Shown: piece after piece, positions 18,734 through 60,492 of the stretch
Position numbering within the stretch: the first letter of the stretch is position 1
How the letters are laid out: each line of letters begins with the position of its first letter
Virus record (IMG/VR): IMGVR_UViG_3300049793_000366
Span: 62,001-126,000 of that record
DNA length: 64,000 nucleotides
Direction: 5' to 3' (one strand)
Made by a program: the position numbers and the translations under genes
The notes under the pieces: model-generated
The model's database searches: none
Told to the model about the DNA's origin: nothing
What the model saw: only the letters and a program-made list of their open reading frames with translations

Positions 18734-18784
18734 TTTTCGAGACTATTTTTTTAATATATATACTACAAAATATGCCCATTTTAG

Positions 18785-45812: not shown

Positions 45813-45830
45813 GTAGTATATATTAAAACA

Positions 45831-47614: not shown

Positions 47615-48130
47615 ATGAAAGATATCCAAAACATAATAGTATTTGACTTCGATAAAACTCTTATATACACAGTTGAAAGAGAAGAAGGTGAGAAGTTATA
47701 TAAGCAAGCTACTGGTAGAGACTGGGAGCATAAAGGGTGGTGGAGTCGTAAGGAAACGCTTGATATCGATATATTCTATCCCGTTAAGAATGAATGGGTT
47801 TACAAAAAATACCTTGAGGCTAAAGCTATGCCGAACACTATCATAATTCTTATGACTGGTCGTATTCTTCCATTAGAAGATGCTGTTATGAAGATATTAA
47901 ACCATCACGAGTTTGAGTTTGACCGCGTTTTCTGCTGTGATCCTCGTCAGGGTGGTGGTCACCCAATGGGCGCAACTTATGGCTTTAAGCTTAAAAAGTT
48001 TGAATCTTTGCTTCGTGAGTTCCCATATGCGAACCTAACTATGTATGACGATAGAACTGAACACGTTTTGGAATTCCAAAAGTGGGCAAGAACAACTAAA
48101 AGAAATATAGAAATTGTACACGTTAAATAA
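47615..48130 (+). CDS. HAD phosphatase resembling the 'Swiss Army Knife' RNA-repair HAD family
   Basis: VFDFDKTL, WWSRKETLD, ILMTGR, FK..F..LL and MYDDRTEH. Confidence 0.75.
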   Translation: MKDIQNIIVFDFDKTLIYTVEREEGEKLYKQATGRDWEHKGWWSRKETLDIDIFYPVKNEWVYKKYLEAKAMPNTIIILMTGRILPLEDAVMKILNHHEFEFDRVFCCDPRQGGGHPMGATYGFKLKKFESLLREFPYANLTMYDDRTEHVLEFQKWARTTKRNIEIVHVK

Positions 48131-48240
48131 TGAATCACAACGAGAAATTATTTATAATAATATTGTTCGTTTTGGGCATGGGTTATTTGATAATAACTGG
48201 TTTCATGTTTATAATTGATATTTTACATCGTATTTTATAA
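48130..48240 (+). CDS. Small membrane protein (36 aa)
   Basis: Not in the ORF track. The ATG overlaps the previous TAA and gives MNHNEKLFIIILFVLGMGYLIITGFMFIIDILHRIL. Confidence 0.45.
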   Translation: MNHNEKLFIIILFVLGMGYLIITGFMFIIDILHRIL

Positions 48241-48299
48241 CAAACAAATCAATTAAAAAGTAATATATAATCAACAAAATAAGATAAAAATCAAAAGAA

Positions 48300-48578
48300 A
48301 TGACAATAACTAAAGAAAAGAAGGATGCGAGTGTAAAGGAAACAACCGCGCATACTAAAAAACTTGTGTTACACAATGATGATTTCAACTCATTCGACCA
48401 TGTTATCGACTCACTCGTACAAGTGTGTGGACACCAGAGTGAGCAGGCAACGCAGTGTGCCTATATTGTTCACTATAAAGGTGAGTGTGATGTTAAATTA
48501 GGTGACGAAGAGACACTTTCTCTTATGAAAGATAAGCTGGTATTCAGAGGTCTTTCTGTTACCTTAGAAGATAATTAA
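48300..48578 (+). CDS. clpS: ClpS N-degron adaptor
   Basis: LVLHNDDFNSFDHVIDSLVQVC...QA.QCAYIVHYKG. Confidence 0.88.
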   Translation: MTITKEKKDASVKETTAHTKKLVLHNDDFNSFDHVIDSLVQVCGHQSEQATQCAYIVHYKGECDVKLGDEETLSLMKDKLVFRGLSVTLEDN

Positions 48579-48579
48579 T

Positions 48580-49365
48580 ATGAATGACAAAGAACTCCTA
48601 TTATCAATTTTAAATGCACCAGATCCATCAGCAGAGCTTATTAAGCTTGATGAATCTGGTGTACTTGATAAATTATTGCCCGAACTTACGGCATTAAAGG
48701 GAGTTGATTCTATTGATGGCCAACAACATAAAGATAACTTCGCACATACTTTACAGGTTTTAAAACAAACTGCTGAAGTATCACAGAATCCTTATCTAAG
48801 ATTAGTTGCCATTCTACACGATGCTGGTAAAGCACCAACCAAAAGATTCGATAAAGAGAGAGGATGGACATTTCACGACCATGAAAATGTAAGTGCTAAA
48901 ATGTCTGTTAAATTATTCAACAGATTAAACCTCGATATTGAAAATCTTGACTATGTTTCTACAATAATAAAATTTCATGGTATAACCAAAGCTCTTACTG
49001 AGCCAGGTGTTACTGACACTGCTATCAAACGATTCTATAATGAATTGGGTGAGTATGTGAGTGATTTATTATTATTTTGTAGTTGTGATATGACCACTAA
49101 ATCAGAAGCTAAACGTCTTAGATTTAGAAAAAGTCTAATAGAACTACACGAGAGAATTACTTCGATTAAGGAATCAGAAGAAGCTAAATTATGGAGGTCA
49201 CCAATCACTGGTGATTTTATCATGAAGGAGCTTGATATAAAGCCTTCTAAGAGGTTGGGTAATATTAAGTCTGAGATAGAACGTGCTATCAAAGCAAATG
49301 AAGTAGAGGATAATTTTGAATCTGCTTACAAGTATTTGTATCTTATCAAAGATAAGTTTCCTTAG
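48580..49365 (+). CDS. HD-domain protein corresponding to the C-terminal half of HD-type CCA-adding enzymes
   Basis: LLPEL...HKDNFAHTLQV...AILHDAGKAPT...FHDHE...A, SPITGDFIMKEL.IKP...LG.IK; no nucleotidyltransferase head. Confidence 0.8.
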   Translation: MNDKELLLSILNAPDPSAELIKLDESGVLDKLLPELTALKGVDSIDGQQHKDNFAHTLQVLKQTAEVSQNPYLRLVAILHDAGKAPTKRFDKERGWTFHDHENVSAKMSVKLFNRLNLDIENLDYVSTIIKFHGITKALTEPGVTDTAIKRFYNELGEYVSDLLLFCSCDMTTKSEAKRLRFRKSLIELHERITSIKESEEAKLWRSPITGDFIMKELDIKPSKRLGNIKSEIERAIKANEVEDNFESAYKYLYLIKDKFP

Positions 49366-49379
49366 TAATTTTTCTTTTT

Positions 49380-49706
49380 ATGACACCACAACAAATCCAA
49401 TTACAGCTACTTAAGCTGTGTCCTAAATTTAATAATAACGCTGATGATATTATCAGAAGCCTTATTGATAATGAACCATATTGGGATTCAATGATTGTGG
49501 ATAATGATTTGATGGTTAAATTAAGAGATTTGGGTACTGGTATCTGGAATGCTGATACTATTTATATAATGACTCACCACCGCGATGTGATGGAGCCAGT
49601 TGTAGAAAGCTGGAATCCCTCTGCCTGGGAATGGATTTCAAATCCGGATGATTTCTTAGGTGGTGCTGATGTAGATTGTCAGGTTGTTAAAGTATGGTTC
49701 GATTAA
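49380..49706 (+). CDS. Hypothetical protein
   Basis: 108-aa ORF in an operon-like run. Confidence 0.55.
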   Translation: MTPQQIQLQLLKLCPKFNNNADDIIRSLIDNEPYWDSMIVDNDLMVKLRDLGTGIWNADTIYIMTHHRDVMEPVVESWNPSAWEWISNPDDFLGGADVDCQVVKVWFD

Positions 49707-49716
49707 TAAGAAATAT

Positions 49717-49896
49717 ATGATATCAAATAACTTTTTAGACGAAATGACTAAGCTTGGTTATAGCGTCCATATTGATGTAGATGAAAAAATAAAAATAATT
49801 AAGGACAATCAGGAAATAATCCTTAGCTTTGAAAAAATTAGACGCATTTTTTTAAATGCTTTAGTGTCACACATAGATAACGCAAAAGATGTATAA
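49717..49896 (+). CDS. Hypothetical protein
   Basis: Probable start MISNNF. Confidence 0.45.
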   Translation: MISNNFLDEMTKLGYSVHIDVDEKIKIIKDNQEIILSFEKIRRIFLNALVSHIDNAKDV

Positions 49897-50197
49897 GTTC
49901 GAACCAGATGAAATTAGAGACTTTAAAATCATTGATATCAATGGTGGTCTCAAAAAGAAAGTCAAACTTACTTTAGTTGGATTAGATGGTAATGCTCACA
50001 ATTTAATTGGTAAGTTTCAATTAGCCGCTAAGAAAGCTGGGTGGTCAAAAGAAGATGTTAATTTCGTAGTTTGGAAAGCAACATCTGGTAATTATGATAA
50101 TCTTCTTGCTACTCTGATGGAATATTCATCGGATCCATTTGGTTCAGACGATGATGATATCGTCTATGTAGATGGTCAACCTTATAAAAAGATGTAA
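49889..50197 (+). CDS. Hypothetical protein
   Basis: LVGLDGNAHNLIG...A.K.GW....SGNYDNLL motif, which I recall from other small phage proteins. Confidence 0.6.
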   Translation: MYKFEPDEIRDFKIIDINGGLKKKVKLTLVGLDGNAHNLIGKFQLAAKKAGWSKEDVNFVVWKATSGNYDNLLATLMEYSSDPFGSDDDDIVYVDGQPYKKM

Positions 50198-50198
50198 A

Positions 50199-50657
50199 AT
50201 GGTAATGGAGATAACAGTATTGGTTTTATGTTTGTCGTTATTAGTCATGTCGTTTCTTGCCGTGAAGCAATATGGTAACAACCTACACCTGAGAGAAGAG
50301 AACGAATTATTAAAGAAGGAAGTCACTAAAAGCAAAACAGATAAGGATTATCTCGTTTCTATTGACCCTGGTGATAGAGCTATCATTCCTAACTATTCTT
50401 TGGTATACGCAAAGGGTGAAAAAGATGAACATCATTTCGAAGTAACATATGAAGTGGAGATAGTAGAAGTATCTCTTGATAAAGTAAAAGTTAAAGCAAC
50501 TGGATTAACAACACACGATAGTAAAATAAATAACGAGCCGTCACGCCGGGCATCATGTATAGCATTTATGCAGGACAAATGGATAAGCAGAAAAAGTATA
50601 GAATTAGTGGTGGATGACACAATGCGAAGAGATGCAAAATTACAACAATTATTATAG
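50199..50657 (+). CDS. N-anchored membrane protein
   Basis: Hydrophobic N-terminus VLVLCLSLLVMSFLAV; ends RDAKLQQLL. Confidence 0.55.
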   Translation: MVMEITVLVLCLSLLVMSFLAVKQYGNNLHLREENELLKKEVTKSKTDKDYLVSIDPGDRAIIPNYSLVYAKGEKDEHHFEVTYEVEIVEVSLDKVKVKATGLTTHDSKINNEPSRRASCIAFMQDKWISRKSIELVVDDTMRRDAKLQQLL

Positions 50658-50678
50658 TAATTTATGCTTAGGAAGCAA

Positions 50679-50706
50679 CAACTATTTTATAAATAATTAC
50701 TATAAT
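50679..50706 (+). promoter_or_regulatory. Candidate autoregulatory ECF promoter
   Basis: CAACTA-N16-TATAAT upstream of the ECF sigma gene. Confidence 0.55.
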
Positions 50707-50757
50707 AGTAATAACGGCAATTGAGGTAATCAAAAATTAAAAAATTAACGGCAATTT

Positions 50758-51378
50758 ATGAATTTAGACGGCAATCTAGTTGAATTTTCTGAACAAGAAA
50801 CTCTTTTCAGAGAGCGAACAGGGAACGATTTCGCATTCTTTTACAAGAAATATTACCCAAAACTTATTTACTACACATCCAAAATGTGTAATGATCCTCA
50901 AGAAGCAGAGGATGTATCTACCGAATCTTTTATGGTAGCTCTTCAAAAAATCGACAAGTACGAGAAAGACAAAGCACAATTTTCCACTTGGTTATTTACG
51001 ATAGCTCGAAACCTTATGTTACAAAATTTAAAAAGCAAGAAAAAGTTTGTATCAATGGATTACGAGATTGATGAAGAGGGAACAACAATGAAAGACTTTA
51101 TCCAAGAACCACATCAAGAGGGTTCTCATTCAGATGAACAGTTCTATGAGCTTTTTGATAAAAAGGCTGAGATTCTGAAAAAACACATCGATAAGCTTGA
51201 ACCAATTTACCGTACGGTTATTGAAATGAGAGAGCTTAAAAAAATGCCCTACAAGGACATCGCGGTTATACTTAATCTGAATGAAAATACAGTTAAGTCG
51301 CAGATACGCAATGGGCGAATAAAACTACAGAAAATGGTCAAGAAAGAATTTGATGTTCTTGACGAAATGTTCACGTAG
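50758..51378 (+). CDS. ECF-type (RpoE-like) sigma-70 factor
   Basis: Region 2 EAEDVSTESF...FSTWLFTIARN; region 4 PYKDIAVILNLNENTVKSQIRNGRIKL. Confidence 0.9.
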   Translation: MNLDGNLVEFSEQETLFRERTGNDFAFFYKKYYPKLIYYTSKMCNDPQEAEDVSTESFMVALQKIDKYEKDKAQFSTWLFTIARNLMLQNLKSKKKFVSMDYEIDEEGTTMKDFIQEPHQEGSHSDEQFYELFDKKAEILKKHIDKLEPIYRTVIEMRELKKMPYKDIAVILNLNENTVKSQIRNGRIKLQKMVKKEFDVLDEMFT

Positions 51379-51492: not shown

Positions 51493-51819
51493 ATGGTTGC
51501 ATTTATAACAGAATTAAACAACACAAACTATAATGACTTCATTAAAAATGATGTAGTATTAGTTGATATTTGGGCGCAGTGGTGTGGTCCTTGTAAACAA
51601 ATAAGTCCTATAGTTGATGAAATATCAATCGACTTTAAAGATAGAGTATTCGTTGGTAAACTTGATGCTGATGCTGATGATAACAAAGAAATTCTTGCTG
51701 AACTTGGTGTTAGAAATATTCCTACAATTTTAATTTTCAAAAACGGTGTTATCGTAGATAAGAGTGTTGGTATGGTTTCTAAAACTGCTTTAGAAGATTT
51801 GCTTAATAAGCATTTATAG
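51493..51819 (+). CDS. trxA: Thioredoxin
   Basis: WAQWCGPCK active site and VRNIPT. Confidence 0.95.
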   Translation: MVAFITELNNTNYNDFIKNDVVLVDIWAQWCGPCKQISPIVDEISIDFKDRVFVGKLDADADDNKEILAELGVRNIPTILIFKNGVIVDKSVGMVSKTALEDLLNKHL

Positions 51820-51838
51820 TATTATATTAAATTGGGTG

Positions 51839-51928
51839 GCTCCCTTGAGTAGAAATACTCCTAAATACGAAAGTATAGAATAGTTAAGGCTGACCTTTAA
51901 GCATCCATCGAAAGATTATACAGGGGGC
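51839..51928 (+). ncRNA. Candidate structured ncRNA (five-way junction)
   Basis: Closing stem GCTCCCT/AGGGGGC encloses GAGTA-GAAA-TACTC, ATAC-GAAA-GTAT, TTAAGG-CTGA-CCTT(T)AA and ATC-GAAA-GAT. Confidence 0.6.
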
Positions 51929-51991
51929 GAAAAATTTAGTATAGTGAAAGAAAGAACCGTAATTGGTTCTTTTTTTATTTATATATACTAC

Positions 51992-52282
51992 ATGAAACAT
52001 CTAAGAAGATTTAACGAAGAGGTAATAAATGCGGAAGAACACAAGATAAAGTTCAGTTGTGATTTTGATCCAAGTTATAGTAAAATGATTTTAGATGCTG
52101 CTGAATCTGCTGGTGTAGACCTAATGGTTCCAGAGGGAGTTAAAAGAAGATATGTAGAAGAAATGCTACATATGTTAATGACCGATTATATCGAGGTTAT
52201 GATGCAGGAAACATTAAACGAATGGGTAGACCACAATGAATCCACTTTCGAAGATGTTATGAAACAAGTTTCTGCTGAATAA
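51992..52282 (+). CDS. Small protein with capsid-targeting-like leader
   Basis: Probable start MKHLRRFNEE, directly after TATATATA. Confidence 0.6.
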   Translation: MKHLRRFNEEVINAEEHKIKFSCDFDPSYSKMILDAAESAGVDLMVPEGVKRRYVEEMLHMLMTDYIEVMMQETLNEWVDHNESTFEDVMKQVSAE

Positions 52283-58693: not shown

Positions 58694-59314
58694 ATGGCAG
58701 GTATCTTCGACAAAGCAAAAAAGAACGCAGTTGTTAAAACAGCAGCAAAAGACGAAAAAACTCGTGTAACTATCGATAACCCAGAGTTCTTCGATAAAAT
58801 TGCTACTTTACAAGTACTTAACGAAAACATGAAACGTGATAAAGCGAAAGCTGACATGATTTCTGATGAAGTTAAAGAAATGGGTATCGAGAAGTGGGCT
58901 GACCTTTATACCGAAAAAGGTAAAAATCCTGAAACCATCATGCTTGAAGCACAAAACGCTACTGGTGACACTGCTCAAGCAATGTTCATGGTTACAGACA
59001 AATACATCAAAATTGACGAAGCTCGTGCTGAACAGTTGAAAGAATCTTATGGTGATGATATCGTTACCGAAGAAACTACTTTCGCTTTCGATGCTAAGAT
59101 GCTTGAGAAATATGCTGATATCATCAGCGAATTAATTGAAAATAGCGACAAAATTAAAGATGCCGACAAAGGCCAGTTAATTGTTGCTACAACCTCTTAC
59201 AACGTAGCAAAAGGTACTATCGACAAGCTTGATAAGTACGGAGAAGTTGCTACAATGGTTCAAGAAGTGAAACCAGTTGTAATGATGAAAAATGTAGAGG
59301 TTATCAACGGGTAA
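58694..59314 (+). CDS. Hypothetical early protein
   Basis: 206-aa Lys/Ala/Asp-rich ORF with strongly biased, high-expression-like codon use. Confidence 0.7.
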   Translation: MAGIFDKAKKNAVVKTAAKDEKTRVTIDNPEFFDKIATLQVLNENMKRDKAKADMISDEVKEMGIEKWADLYTEKGKNPETIMLEAQNATGDTAQAMFMVTDKYIKIDEARAEQLKESYGDDIVTEETTFAFDAKMLEKYADIISELIENSDKIKDADKGQLIVATTSYNVAKGTIDKLDKYGEVATMVQEVKPVVMMKNVEVING

Positions 59315-59316
59315 CC

Positions 59317-59436
59317 TTTTAGGAGCGTCTCTTGTTGTCGAAGAGTGGTGAGAAATCATCACTCTTTGTCAGATGGTGACTAAATGATACAACCAAATAG
59401 GTCACGCTACTATTTAATATAGTAGTTCTCTTAGAA
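59317..59436 (+). ncRNA. Candidate four-way-junction RNA
   Basis: Closing stem TTTTAGGAG/CTCTTAGAA; arms CGTCT/AGATG ending in an 11-bp GAAA hairpin, GTGACT/GGTCAC and CTACTAT/ATAGTAG. Confidence 0.5.
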
Positions 59437-59445
59437 ATTAAAAAT

Positions 59446-59511
59446 GGGGATTTAGCTCAGTGTTTAGAGCGTCTGTAAAGAAGGTCGGTGGTTCGATTCC
59501 ATCAATCTCCA
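59446..59511 (+). tRNA. tRNA-Ala-like RNA with a truncated anticodon arm (no anticodon)
   Basis: Acceptor GGGGATT/AATCTCC (G3:U70) with A73; D-stem GCTC/GAGC; T-arm GGTGG-TTCGATT-CCATC; variable AGGTC; anticodon arm only TCT-GTAA-AGA. Confidence 0.75.
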
Positions 59512-59629: not shown

Positions 59630-59701
59630 GGTTTGGTAGCTCAATGGCAGAGCGGCGGATTCTAAACCCGAAGGTTGTGGGTTCGAACCCCATCCGAACC
59701 A
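59630..59701 (+). tRNA. Amber suppressor tRNA (anticodon CUA)
   Basis: Acceptor GGTTTGG/CCGAACC with A73; D-arm GCTC-AATGGCA-GAGC; anticodon loop TT-CTA-AA (59660-59666) on CGG/CCG; T-arm GTGGG-TTCGAAC-CCCAT; no encoded CCA. Confidence 0.78.
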
Positions 59702-59702
59702 C

Positions 59703-59789: not shown

Positions 59790-60492
59790 ACAATAAATTG
59801 ATTTTGGATATTGGTCTATCACCGCTCTTGAATACACCCATTCCTATAATTACGGAAATAGTATCATCTTTCTCTTCGGTTTTTATTGCGCGACTTATAA
59901 CTACGTCTAAATCATTCTTATTTATGATTAGAACAGACTTCTCAGTCCAAGTGGGTACTACATAGCATTTTCTATTATTAATGAAGCCAGCCTCAGAGAA
60001 ACCCATATTCTTACTAAATAGTAGACTATTCTGCTTTTTGTAAATATCATTGAATGCAGGCATACTGAATAAAACTATTGAGTCAGCCTTTAGACATGAT
60101 TCTATACTCGACATTACGTATTCCTTAGACTTAGTTTTCTTTGAGAAAAGTCTCTTGAAGAAATTCTTTGCCTTATAAAACTTGATGTATTCTATTACAT
60201 TAGCATTTGATGATAAATAATTTAGAATGTGACTATGAATGTGACTCTTAGCTAAATTAGCAGCTATTGGTGTTAAGTCAATATCATTTTTATTATGTTG
60301 GATATCAATATTATGTTCATCCAAAACACAGTCTATAAGTACCGTATCAGTTTCGATTAGGTCGCCTTTGTTGACGGTTGTTTGCTTTTGATACTTACCT
60401 TTATTTCTATCGATGTAGAAAATATTTACAATATCGCTAACGTTAGATGCATTCATAGCACCTGATAAAATCTCGTGTTTATCTATGTTCAT
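59788..60492 (-). CDS. Hypothetical protein
   Basis: 234-aa ORF converging on the terminator. Confidence 0.55.
   Translation of the reverse strand: MNIDKHEILSGAMNASNVSDIVNIFYIDRNKGKYQKQTTVNKGDLIETDTVLIDCVLDEHNIDIQHNKNDIDLTPIAANLAKSHIHSHILNYLSSNANVIEYIKFYKAKNFFKRLFSKKTKSKEYVMSSIESCLKADSIVLFSMPAFNDIYKKQNSLLFSKNMGFSEAGFINNRKCYVVPTWTEKSVLIINKNDLDVVISRAIKTEEKDDTISVIIGMGVFKSGDRPISKINLL

Follow-up and report, generated by a model that had tools for sequence, protein, structure and literature searches.

Small stable RNAs of unknown function have been described in phage tRNA clusters, such as the species 1 and species 2 RNAs of T4 (rnaC/rnaD), which are non-tRNA, sit inside or at the edge of tRNA gene arrays, and are presumably released by the tRNA-processing machinery. 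Large structured ncRNAs such as GOLLD and ROOL (Rfam RF02032 and relatives) are also phage-associated and typically found next to tRNA genes. The RNA characterized here behaves like the T4 RNAs, although no sequence or structure relation to them is expected, it also occurs beside tmRNA and in mRNA 3′ UTRs, and its hosts are probably Bacteroidota. It shares a neighborhood with GOLLD in two loci, but GOLLD is ornate and over 400 nt, whereas this RNA is 62-96 nt and gives no match to the GOLLD model. In seven loci it occupies the position of a tmRNA 5′ leader. However, ordinary leaders of pre-tmRNA and pre-tRNA transcripts are short and unconserved, whereas this is a conserved folded domain that also occurs with no tmRNA nearby. 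In size, in having a closing helix plus two hairpins, and in combining invariant junction nucleotides with variable peripheral stems, it resembles small three-way-junction aptamers (e.g. the purine riboswitch) and small self-cleaving ribozymes (hammerhead, pistol, hatchet, twister-sister). None of their Rfam models scores even at E<=10, the junction strand lengths (6/6/4-5 nt) do not fit the hammerhead core, tetraloops rule out a purine-type loop-loop kiss, and the downstream genes are mostly RNAs. We found no description of this RNA in the searchable literature.

The element was first noticed in a 64,000-nucleotide stretch (the window), bases 62001-126000 of a 507,910-bp IMG/VR phage record that is 97% complete and distantly related at the DNA level to two 630-640-kb uncultured megaphage records. 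IMG/VR labels this record a provirus, and the protein index lists the source contig as 711,805 bp, which leaves some doubt over the boundary call. The original prediction described a GC-enriched five-way-junction RNA after a thioredoxin gene, with three GAAA-capped hairpins and a terminator-like hairpin downstream, and this observation is confirmed at every position. A 7-bp stem, P1 (GCUCCCU, 51839-51845, with AGGGGGC, 51922-51928; one G·U), encloses H1 (51847-51860, 5 bp, GAAA loop), H2 (51865-51876, 4 bp, GAAA loop), H3 (51884-51900, 6 bp with a 1-nt bulge, CUGA loop), and H4 (51907-51916, 3 bp, GAAA loop). RNAfold reproduces P1, H1, H2, and H4 in the MFE structure and H3 in part in the centroid. 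The intrinsic terminator at 51947-51976 (+) is confirmed by a terminator scan, the upstream gene (51493-51819, +) is thioredoxin (Pfam PF00085, 2.4e-25), and the GC content is 0.40 in the element against 0.20-0.30 in the flanking intergenic DNA. Folding a longer stretch revealed a further 14-bp A-U/G-U helix, P0 (51820-51833 with 51933-51946), which encloses the whole element, begins 1 nt after the thioredoxin TAG stop, and ends at the foot of the terminator. The outer helix contains three G·U pairs, and all four non-Watson-Crick pairs in P0 and P1 are G·U on the + strand. As a DNA inverted repeat P0 is unremarkable, and it is perfect only as + strand RNA.

From this sequence alone, the evidence that the fold exceeds chance is marginal. 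The z-score is -1.26 for the 98-nt core and -2.78 for the 127-nt element, compared to -0.62 for the reverse strand, and 147 of 6390 windows of 127 nt in the 64-kb stretch (about 2%) fold as well for their GC content. A cluster of three GAAA-capped hairpins is unique in the 508-kb genome, but such clusters appeared in 1 of 10 single-strand Markov simulations of it. A search of Rfam 15, at gathering thresholds and at E<=10, which had been set beforehand as a test of the prediction, found no tRNA, tmRNA, riboswitch, ribozyme, or other family at the locus, and ARAGORN was silent there. The minimal form of the RNA, taken from a homolog, matches no Rfam 15 family either. The ribozyme models without a match at E<=10, for both the window copy and the minimal homolog, include hammerhead, HDV-like, twister, twister-sister, pistol, hatchet, and hairpin. 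A degenerate class-II tRNA was rejected because all loops are tetraloops and there is no T-loop. Hammerhead and pistol folds were rejected by eye because the core strand lengths do not fit, in addition to the absence of model hits, and the loop sequences do not fit a K-turn or an 11-nt tetraloop receptor. Read-through of the thioredoxin TAG was dropped because it would add only 15 codons and the genome is mostly standard code. In this regard, the window carries a suppressor tRNA with anticodon CUA at 59630-59702 (+), which ARAGORN labels Pyl. The standard code still gives 84% ORF coverage of the genome, reading TAG as sense adds coverage mainly in the last ~50 kb (0.50 to 0.62), and thioredoxin ends in TAG here whereas relatives use TAA.

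The closest relatives of this megaphage lack the element. The neighboring UvsY-like gene has 25 homologs in IMG/VR, and the thioredoxin has many homologs at 41-85% identity. In every locus retrieved, thioredoxin is followed either within ~25 nt by a terminator homologous to that of the window (AAAGAAC...GTTCTTTTTT hairpins) and then the convergent UvsY-like gene, or by other cargo, namely PPK2 plus a 109-aa ORF, SmpB, a TnpB fragment, or a tRNA, and never by the RNA. The interval between thioredoxin and the UvsY-like gene (51820-52282 in the window; compared with loci L032-L035, L044-L055, and L108-L115) is thus a cargo hot spot in this phage clade, which can be empty or hold these genes (the TnpB fragment being C-terminal), and one relative has a GIY-YIG homing endonuclease just upstream. 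In the window it also contains orf96 (51992-52282, +), which is wedged between the terminator and the stop codon of the convergent gene, has no homolog among 5.8 billion proteins and no Pfam domain, is absent in relatives, and is not part of the RNA. The RNA (51834-51946) and orf96 are therefore two separate lineage-specific insertions on either side of a terminator that is ancestral to the thioredoxin gene and probably works in both directions. The upstream gene run (47615-51378, +) includes a HAD domain of the 'Swiss Army Knife' RNA-repair proteins, an HD-domain protein, and an ECF-type sigma-70 factor directly before thioredoxin.

Several further searches were consistent with a singleton. 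A single-sequence covariance model found no hit in the phage's own genome, two Lak megaphage records, 25 UvsY-syntenic IMG/VR loci, or five large relatives. A P1-based pattern gave 8 chance hits, and a loop and junction pattern that included H1 and H2 gave none, which is now explained because H1 and H2 are unique to the window. Exact 20-21-mers returned nothing from GTDB genomes and JGI metagenomes except a chance hit in a coding region, an architecture pattern in metagenomes gave 51 chance hits, including a recurrent unrelated gut intergenic sequence, and blastn against GenBank phages and PLSDB plasmids returned nothing. The only public sequencing run holding this DNA is a soil metagenome, probably its source, with no RNA runs and no variant contig seen. 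These results, together with the absence from all near relatives, the ordinary folding energy, the single copy in its own genome, and the location in a cargo hot spot, would fit a non-functional lineage-specific insertion, such as a quasi-palindromic or MITE-like scrap whose fold is incidental. As a ~127-nt self-folding insert between a stop codon and a terminator, the window copy resembles co-transcribed palindromic intergenic elements such as ERIC, Correia, and REP/BIME, but those elements are multi-copy with terminal inverted repeats, whereas this one is single-copy with a conserved asymmetric core.

The reading as a non-functional insertion became very unlikely, and is largely refuted, once homologs were found, and the strand-specific pairing through G·U pairs and the finding of one copy per genome, not many, also speak against it. 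Two degenerate patterns that left the stems free and omitted H1 and H2 identified 14 loci in IMG/VR (here L118 to L131; 9 distinct sequences), each with a 62-71-nt homolog. The single-sequence model scores these loci at 35-58 bits, and a family model built from the 10 distinct sequences, including the window copy, scores them at 76-109 bits and the window copy at 78.3 bits (E 6e-17). The element is therefore not an orphan, as had been proposed, but an enlarged member of a previously unlisted family of at least 15 loci, with near-identical cores in unrelated genomic contexts in at least six other phage lineages. Only degenerate core patterns uncovered this family, after the single sequence had looked statistically ordinary and synteny-based searches had failed. 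Among the places where the family model found nothing were the closest large relatives of this phage, the two Lak-type records, and about 100 other loci, including the phage's own tmRNA locus. It also gave no true match among 151 Bacteroidota genomes, nor did a pattern search of 401, although only the top candidates were scored and this is a weak negative. Each phage genome searched whole has exactly one copy, namely two complete genomes of 310 kb (with terminal repeats) and 269 kb, two partial records, and the window's own genome.

Our alignment indicates that the conserved core is a three-way junction rather than the five-way junction with three GAAA loops. Every other member spans 61-71 nt across the core and lacks H1 and H2, so that the 32 nt at 51847-51878 (H1, a linker, H2, and AG) are a lineage-specific insertion into the first junction strand. 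From the outside in, the fold begins with P0, which is AAAUCAC/GUGAUUU (7 bp) in most members, a 4-bp UUGU/ACAA in L121, 14 bp in the window, and not evident in L120. It is followed by an internal loop of GGGUG (51834-51838) and GAAA (51929-51932). GGGUG is identical in 8 of 10 distinct sequences, with GGAUG in L120 and GAGUG in L131, and on the other side GAA is invariant and the fourth A nearly so. Within P1, the first junction strand UAAUAG (U51846 with AAUAG, 51879-51883, in the window) leads to H3 (UUAAGG[CUGA]CCUU(U)UAA), which is conserved in sequence, loop CUGA included, and has one extra bulged U in the window. The second junction strand, GCAUCC (51901-51906), precedes H4, which is AUC/GAU in the window and elsewhere a variable hairpin of 3 to 8 bp with GAAA, GAGA, or other loops. 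This is the only widely shared GNRA loop, and it is replaced in 2 members. The third junction strand is UAUAC in the window (51917-51921), of which AUAC is invariant in the family. The window copy retains all core positions apart from the insertion and the bulged U. The AAUAG and GCAUCC strands are identical in all members, but the pattern that found 13 of the 14 loci fixed 19 core nucleotides, including AAUAG, and the search patterns required GCAUCC. Invariance at those positions is thus partly by construction, and more divergent members were not sampled, whereas P1, both internal-loop strands, and AUAC were not fixed by that pattern and yet are conserved.

The helices are supported by covariation, and it is the homologs and their covariation, not the folding energy, that show the element to be more than chance. 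On the model-fitted alignment 95.7% of cells are paired, and 10 pairs change on both sides against 3.1 in shuffles (0 of 500 reach it), with values collapsing when the partners are slid. P0 covaries at 6 of 7 pairs, H4 at 3 of 3 (GAC/GUC, AAC/GUU, ACC/GGU; L121 has a 7-8-bp version), and H3 at one (U-A to C-G in L120). P1 is paired in 100% of cells but shows only G-C to G-U changes and no double-sided change. As only about 7 independent lineages and 10 distinct sequences are known, the covariation rests on few events, mostly in P0 and H4. RNAalifold finds the same helices on its own, as do single-sequence folds of L119 (centroid), L121, and L122. In addition, GGGUG could pair with CAUCC (51902-51906) to form a pseudoknot. 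One member, L120, changes a G·U to A-U in this putative pairing and another, L131, breaks one pair, which is suggestive only.

The genomic context of the RNA links it to translation-related RNA genes. In 7 loci it lies 26-27 nt upstream of a complete tmRNA gene on the same strand, with the tmRNA a separate gene (two more loci are cut by the locus end), and in 2 it lies before tRNA-Met and a GOLLD RNA. In these two, L122 and L126, full-length GOLLD RNAs (L122:3684-4088 and L126:5714-6118; 284-291 bits) lie about 0.7 kb downstream of the RNA and tRNA-Met. In one locus, L120, it is the last unit of an eight-tRNA array, 8 nt after tRNA-His and followed by an ORF, and in one it lies inside a tRNA cluster. 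In L121 and in the window it lies directly after an ORF's stop codon and before a terminator. For the window copy the nearest tRNAs are 7.5 kb away and the tmRNA about 53 kb away, so that a location in a tRNA/tmRNA gene island is frequent but not defining. The phage encodes its own tmRNA (59955-60348 of the record, - strand, just left of the window; tag peptide AKSKTTATQVEELEIA) and SmpB (177791-178204 of the record, + strand), and this tmRNA, unlike those of the 7 other phages, is not preceded by the RNA. Flanks are unrelated between lineages while the core is nearly identical. In the tmRNA-type and GOLLD-type loci a TAnnTTTG box, the Bacteroidota -7 promoter consensus, lies 6 nt before P0, suggesting that transcription starts at P0 and that the hosts are Bacteroidota.

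In the window, no copy of the phage's recurrent promoter-like motif lies between thioredoxin and the RNA. This motif, TATATACT(AC), occurs 14 times against 6 expected (0 of 100 shuffles reach that), at 51982-51991, 45813-45822 (-), 18757-18766, 31362, and 62914 (-), among others, often just after a terminator and 0-25 nt before an ATG, twice as TATATACTACATGAAA. It is probably a phage promoter, possibly giving leaderless mRNAs, and the same words recur elsewhere in the source contigs. The ORF orf96 is preceded by its own TATATACTAC motif, and a promoter for orf96 inside the element was rejected for this reason and because the consensus scan there is at chance level.

The sequence context also bears on whether the RNA is a cis-acting ligand sensor, in which ligand binding would stabilize P1 and P0 and decide whether transcription reads on into tmRNA, tRNA/GOLLD, or a downstream ORF. 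A compact three-way junction with invariant junction strands and a possible pseudoknot is reminiscent of small aptamers, the RNA sits at the start of transcription units, P0 is followed by U4-U7 in L118, L119, L131, L122, and L126, a canonical terminator follows in the window and in L121, and in L120 an ORF with a Shine-Dalgarno-like GGAG starts ~37 nt downstream. On the other hand, no aptamer model in Rfam 15 matches, the downstream genes are mostly ncRNAs, which is unusual for riboswitches, the terminator in the window exists without the RNA in relatives, orf96 has its own promoter-like motif, no antiterminator alternative pairing was found, and in two loci the RNA lies in a 3′ UTR. We consider this possibility unlikely. 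A new class of small self-cleaving ribozyme that helps cut polycistronic tRNA, tmRNA, or GOLLD precursors is slightly less likely still. An RNA of about 62 nt with a very highly conserved core and variable peripheral helices, phage-borne and embedded among RNAs that must be cut out of precursors, would fit such a role, and as no known ribozyme model matches, it would be a new class if catalytic. However, RNase P and RNase Z already explain processing of the neighbors, cleavage has no obvious use in the 3′ UTRs of the window and L121, and no candidate cleavage dinucleotide can be named from the alignment.

A further possibility is that the RNA is a tRNA-array passenger that is processed like a tRNA and titrates a host tRNA-directed enzyme, for example a defense nuclease or a processing or modification enzyme. 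Consistent with this, P1 is acceptor-like in its 7 bp, the L120 copy has tRNA-like spacing and no evident P0, and the RNA co-occurs with tRNA or tmRNA genes in 11 of 15 loci. The same phage also carries a tRNA-like gene at 59446-59511 (+; Rfam tRNA, 53 bits) that ARAGORN does not call, in which the acceptor, D, and T arms are canonical but the anticodon arm is replaced by a 3-bp stem capped by a GUAA tetraloop, making it an anticodon-less tRNA mimic. Just upstream of the tRNA genes, 59301-59427 (+) is one of the strongest-folding stretches of the window (-41 kcal/mol, residual z about -4), contains a 7-bp hairpin capped by GAAA, has no Rfam match, and may be another small RNA. Against the decoy reading, the element has no T-loop, D-arm, anticodon loop, or CCA, the tRNA covariance model shows nothing at E<=10, ARAGORN is silent, and H4 is separated from P1 by 4-5 unpaired nucleotides, so an acceptor/T-like coaxial stack is not evident. 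This reading is also doubtful, although it overlaps with the one we prefer.

The explanation we favor, with somewhat more confidence than not, is that the element is a real RNA gene, an expanded member of a new family of small structured RNAs (~65-80 nt) found once per genome in very large phages (contigs up to 310 kb; 508 kb here), usually next to their tmRNA or tRNA genes. Our analysis demonstrates the conserved, strand-specific fold with its nearly invariant core and variable peripheral helices, the single copy in the genomes searched whole, and the two extra hairpins and longer P0 of the window copy. Transcription, processing, and any binding, sensing, catalytic, or decoy activity are instead inferred from sequence and gene neighborhood. 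In this view, the window RNA would be made as the tail of the thioredoxin transcript, most likely as its 3′ UTR, and end at the ancestral terminator, which, being probably bidirectional, would shield it from antisense transcription. In most other phages it would be the first element of a transcript that continues into tmRNA or into tRNA-Met and GOLLD, or the last unit of a tRNA array, and would be released as a stable ~65-80-nt RNA by the cuts that mature its neighbors (RNase P and 3′ trimming), or by ending at P0 or a terminator. Because ~45 core positions, including the P1 sequence and all junction strands, are held constant while P0 and H4 drift, the junction core most likely forms one specific surface or pocket. 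Our preferred reading, which is tentative and weakly supported, is that it binds a conserved protein or ribonucleoprotein of the tRNA/tmRNA/translation sphere and acts in trans. This rests only on the conservation pattern and gene neighborhood, and the absence of the RNA from the closest relatives implies that it is dispensable or recently acquired. The original interpretation is thus partly supported. A discrete, strand-specific structured phage RNA outside known families is backed by homologs with covarying helices, whereas its orphan status and the five-way junction as defining architecture are not supported, and the proposed protein-sponge, decoy, and new-ribozyme roles remain hypotheses. 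It is also possible, though improbable, that the 62-nt core with its putative pseudoknot is a new catalytic or ligand-sensing RNA class, either a self-cleaving ribozyme or an aptamer, that lets giant phages gate or process their own tmRNA, tRNA, and GOLLD transcripts, in which case the window copy would be a natural insertion variant showing where the fold tolerates extra domains.

Giant phages carry their own translation-related RNAs, including tRNA arrays and tmRNA, as well as enigmatic RNAs such as GOLLD. At about 62 nt, the RNA identified here is small enough for direct biochemical study, and the window copy provides a natural experiment in which two extra hairpins sit in one junction strand without loss of any core nucleotide. 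A further small RNA that is almost invariant in its core, single-copy, and physically tied to these genes points to an unrecognized component of how such phages handle tRNA/tmRNA biology or RNA processing in their probably Bacteroidota hosts.
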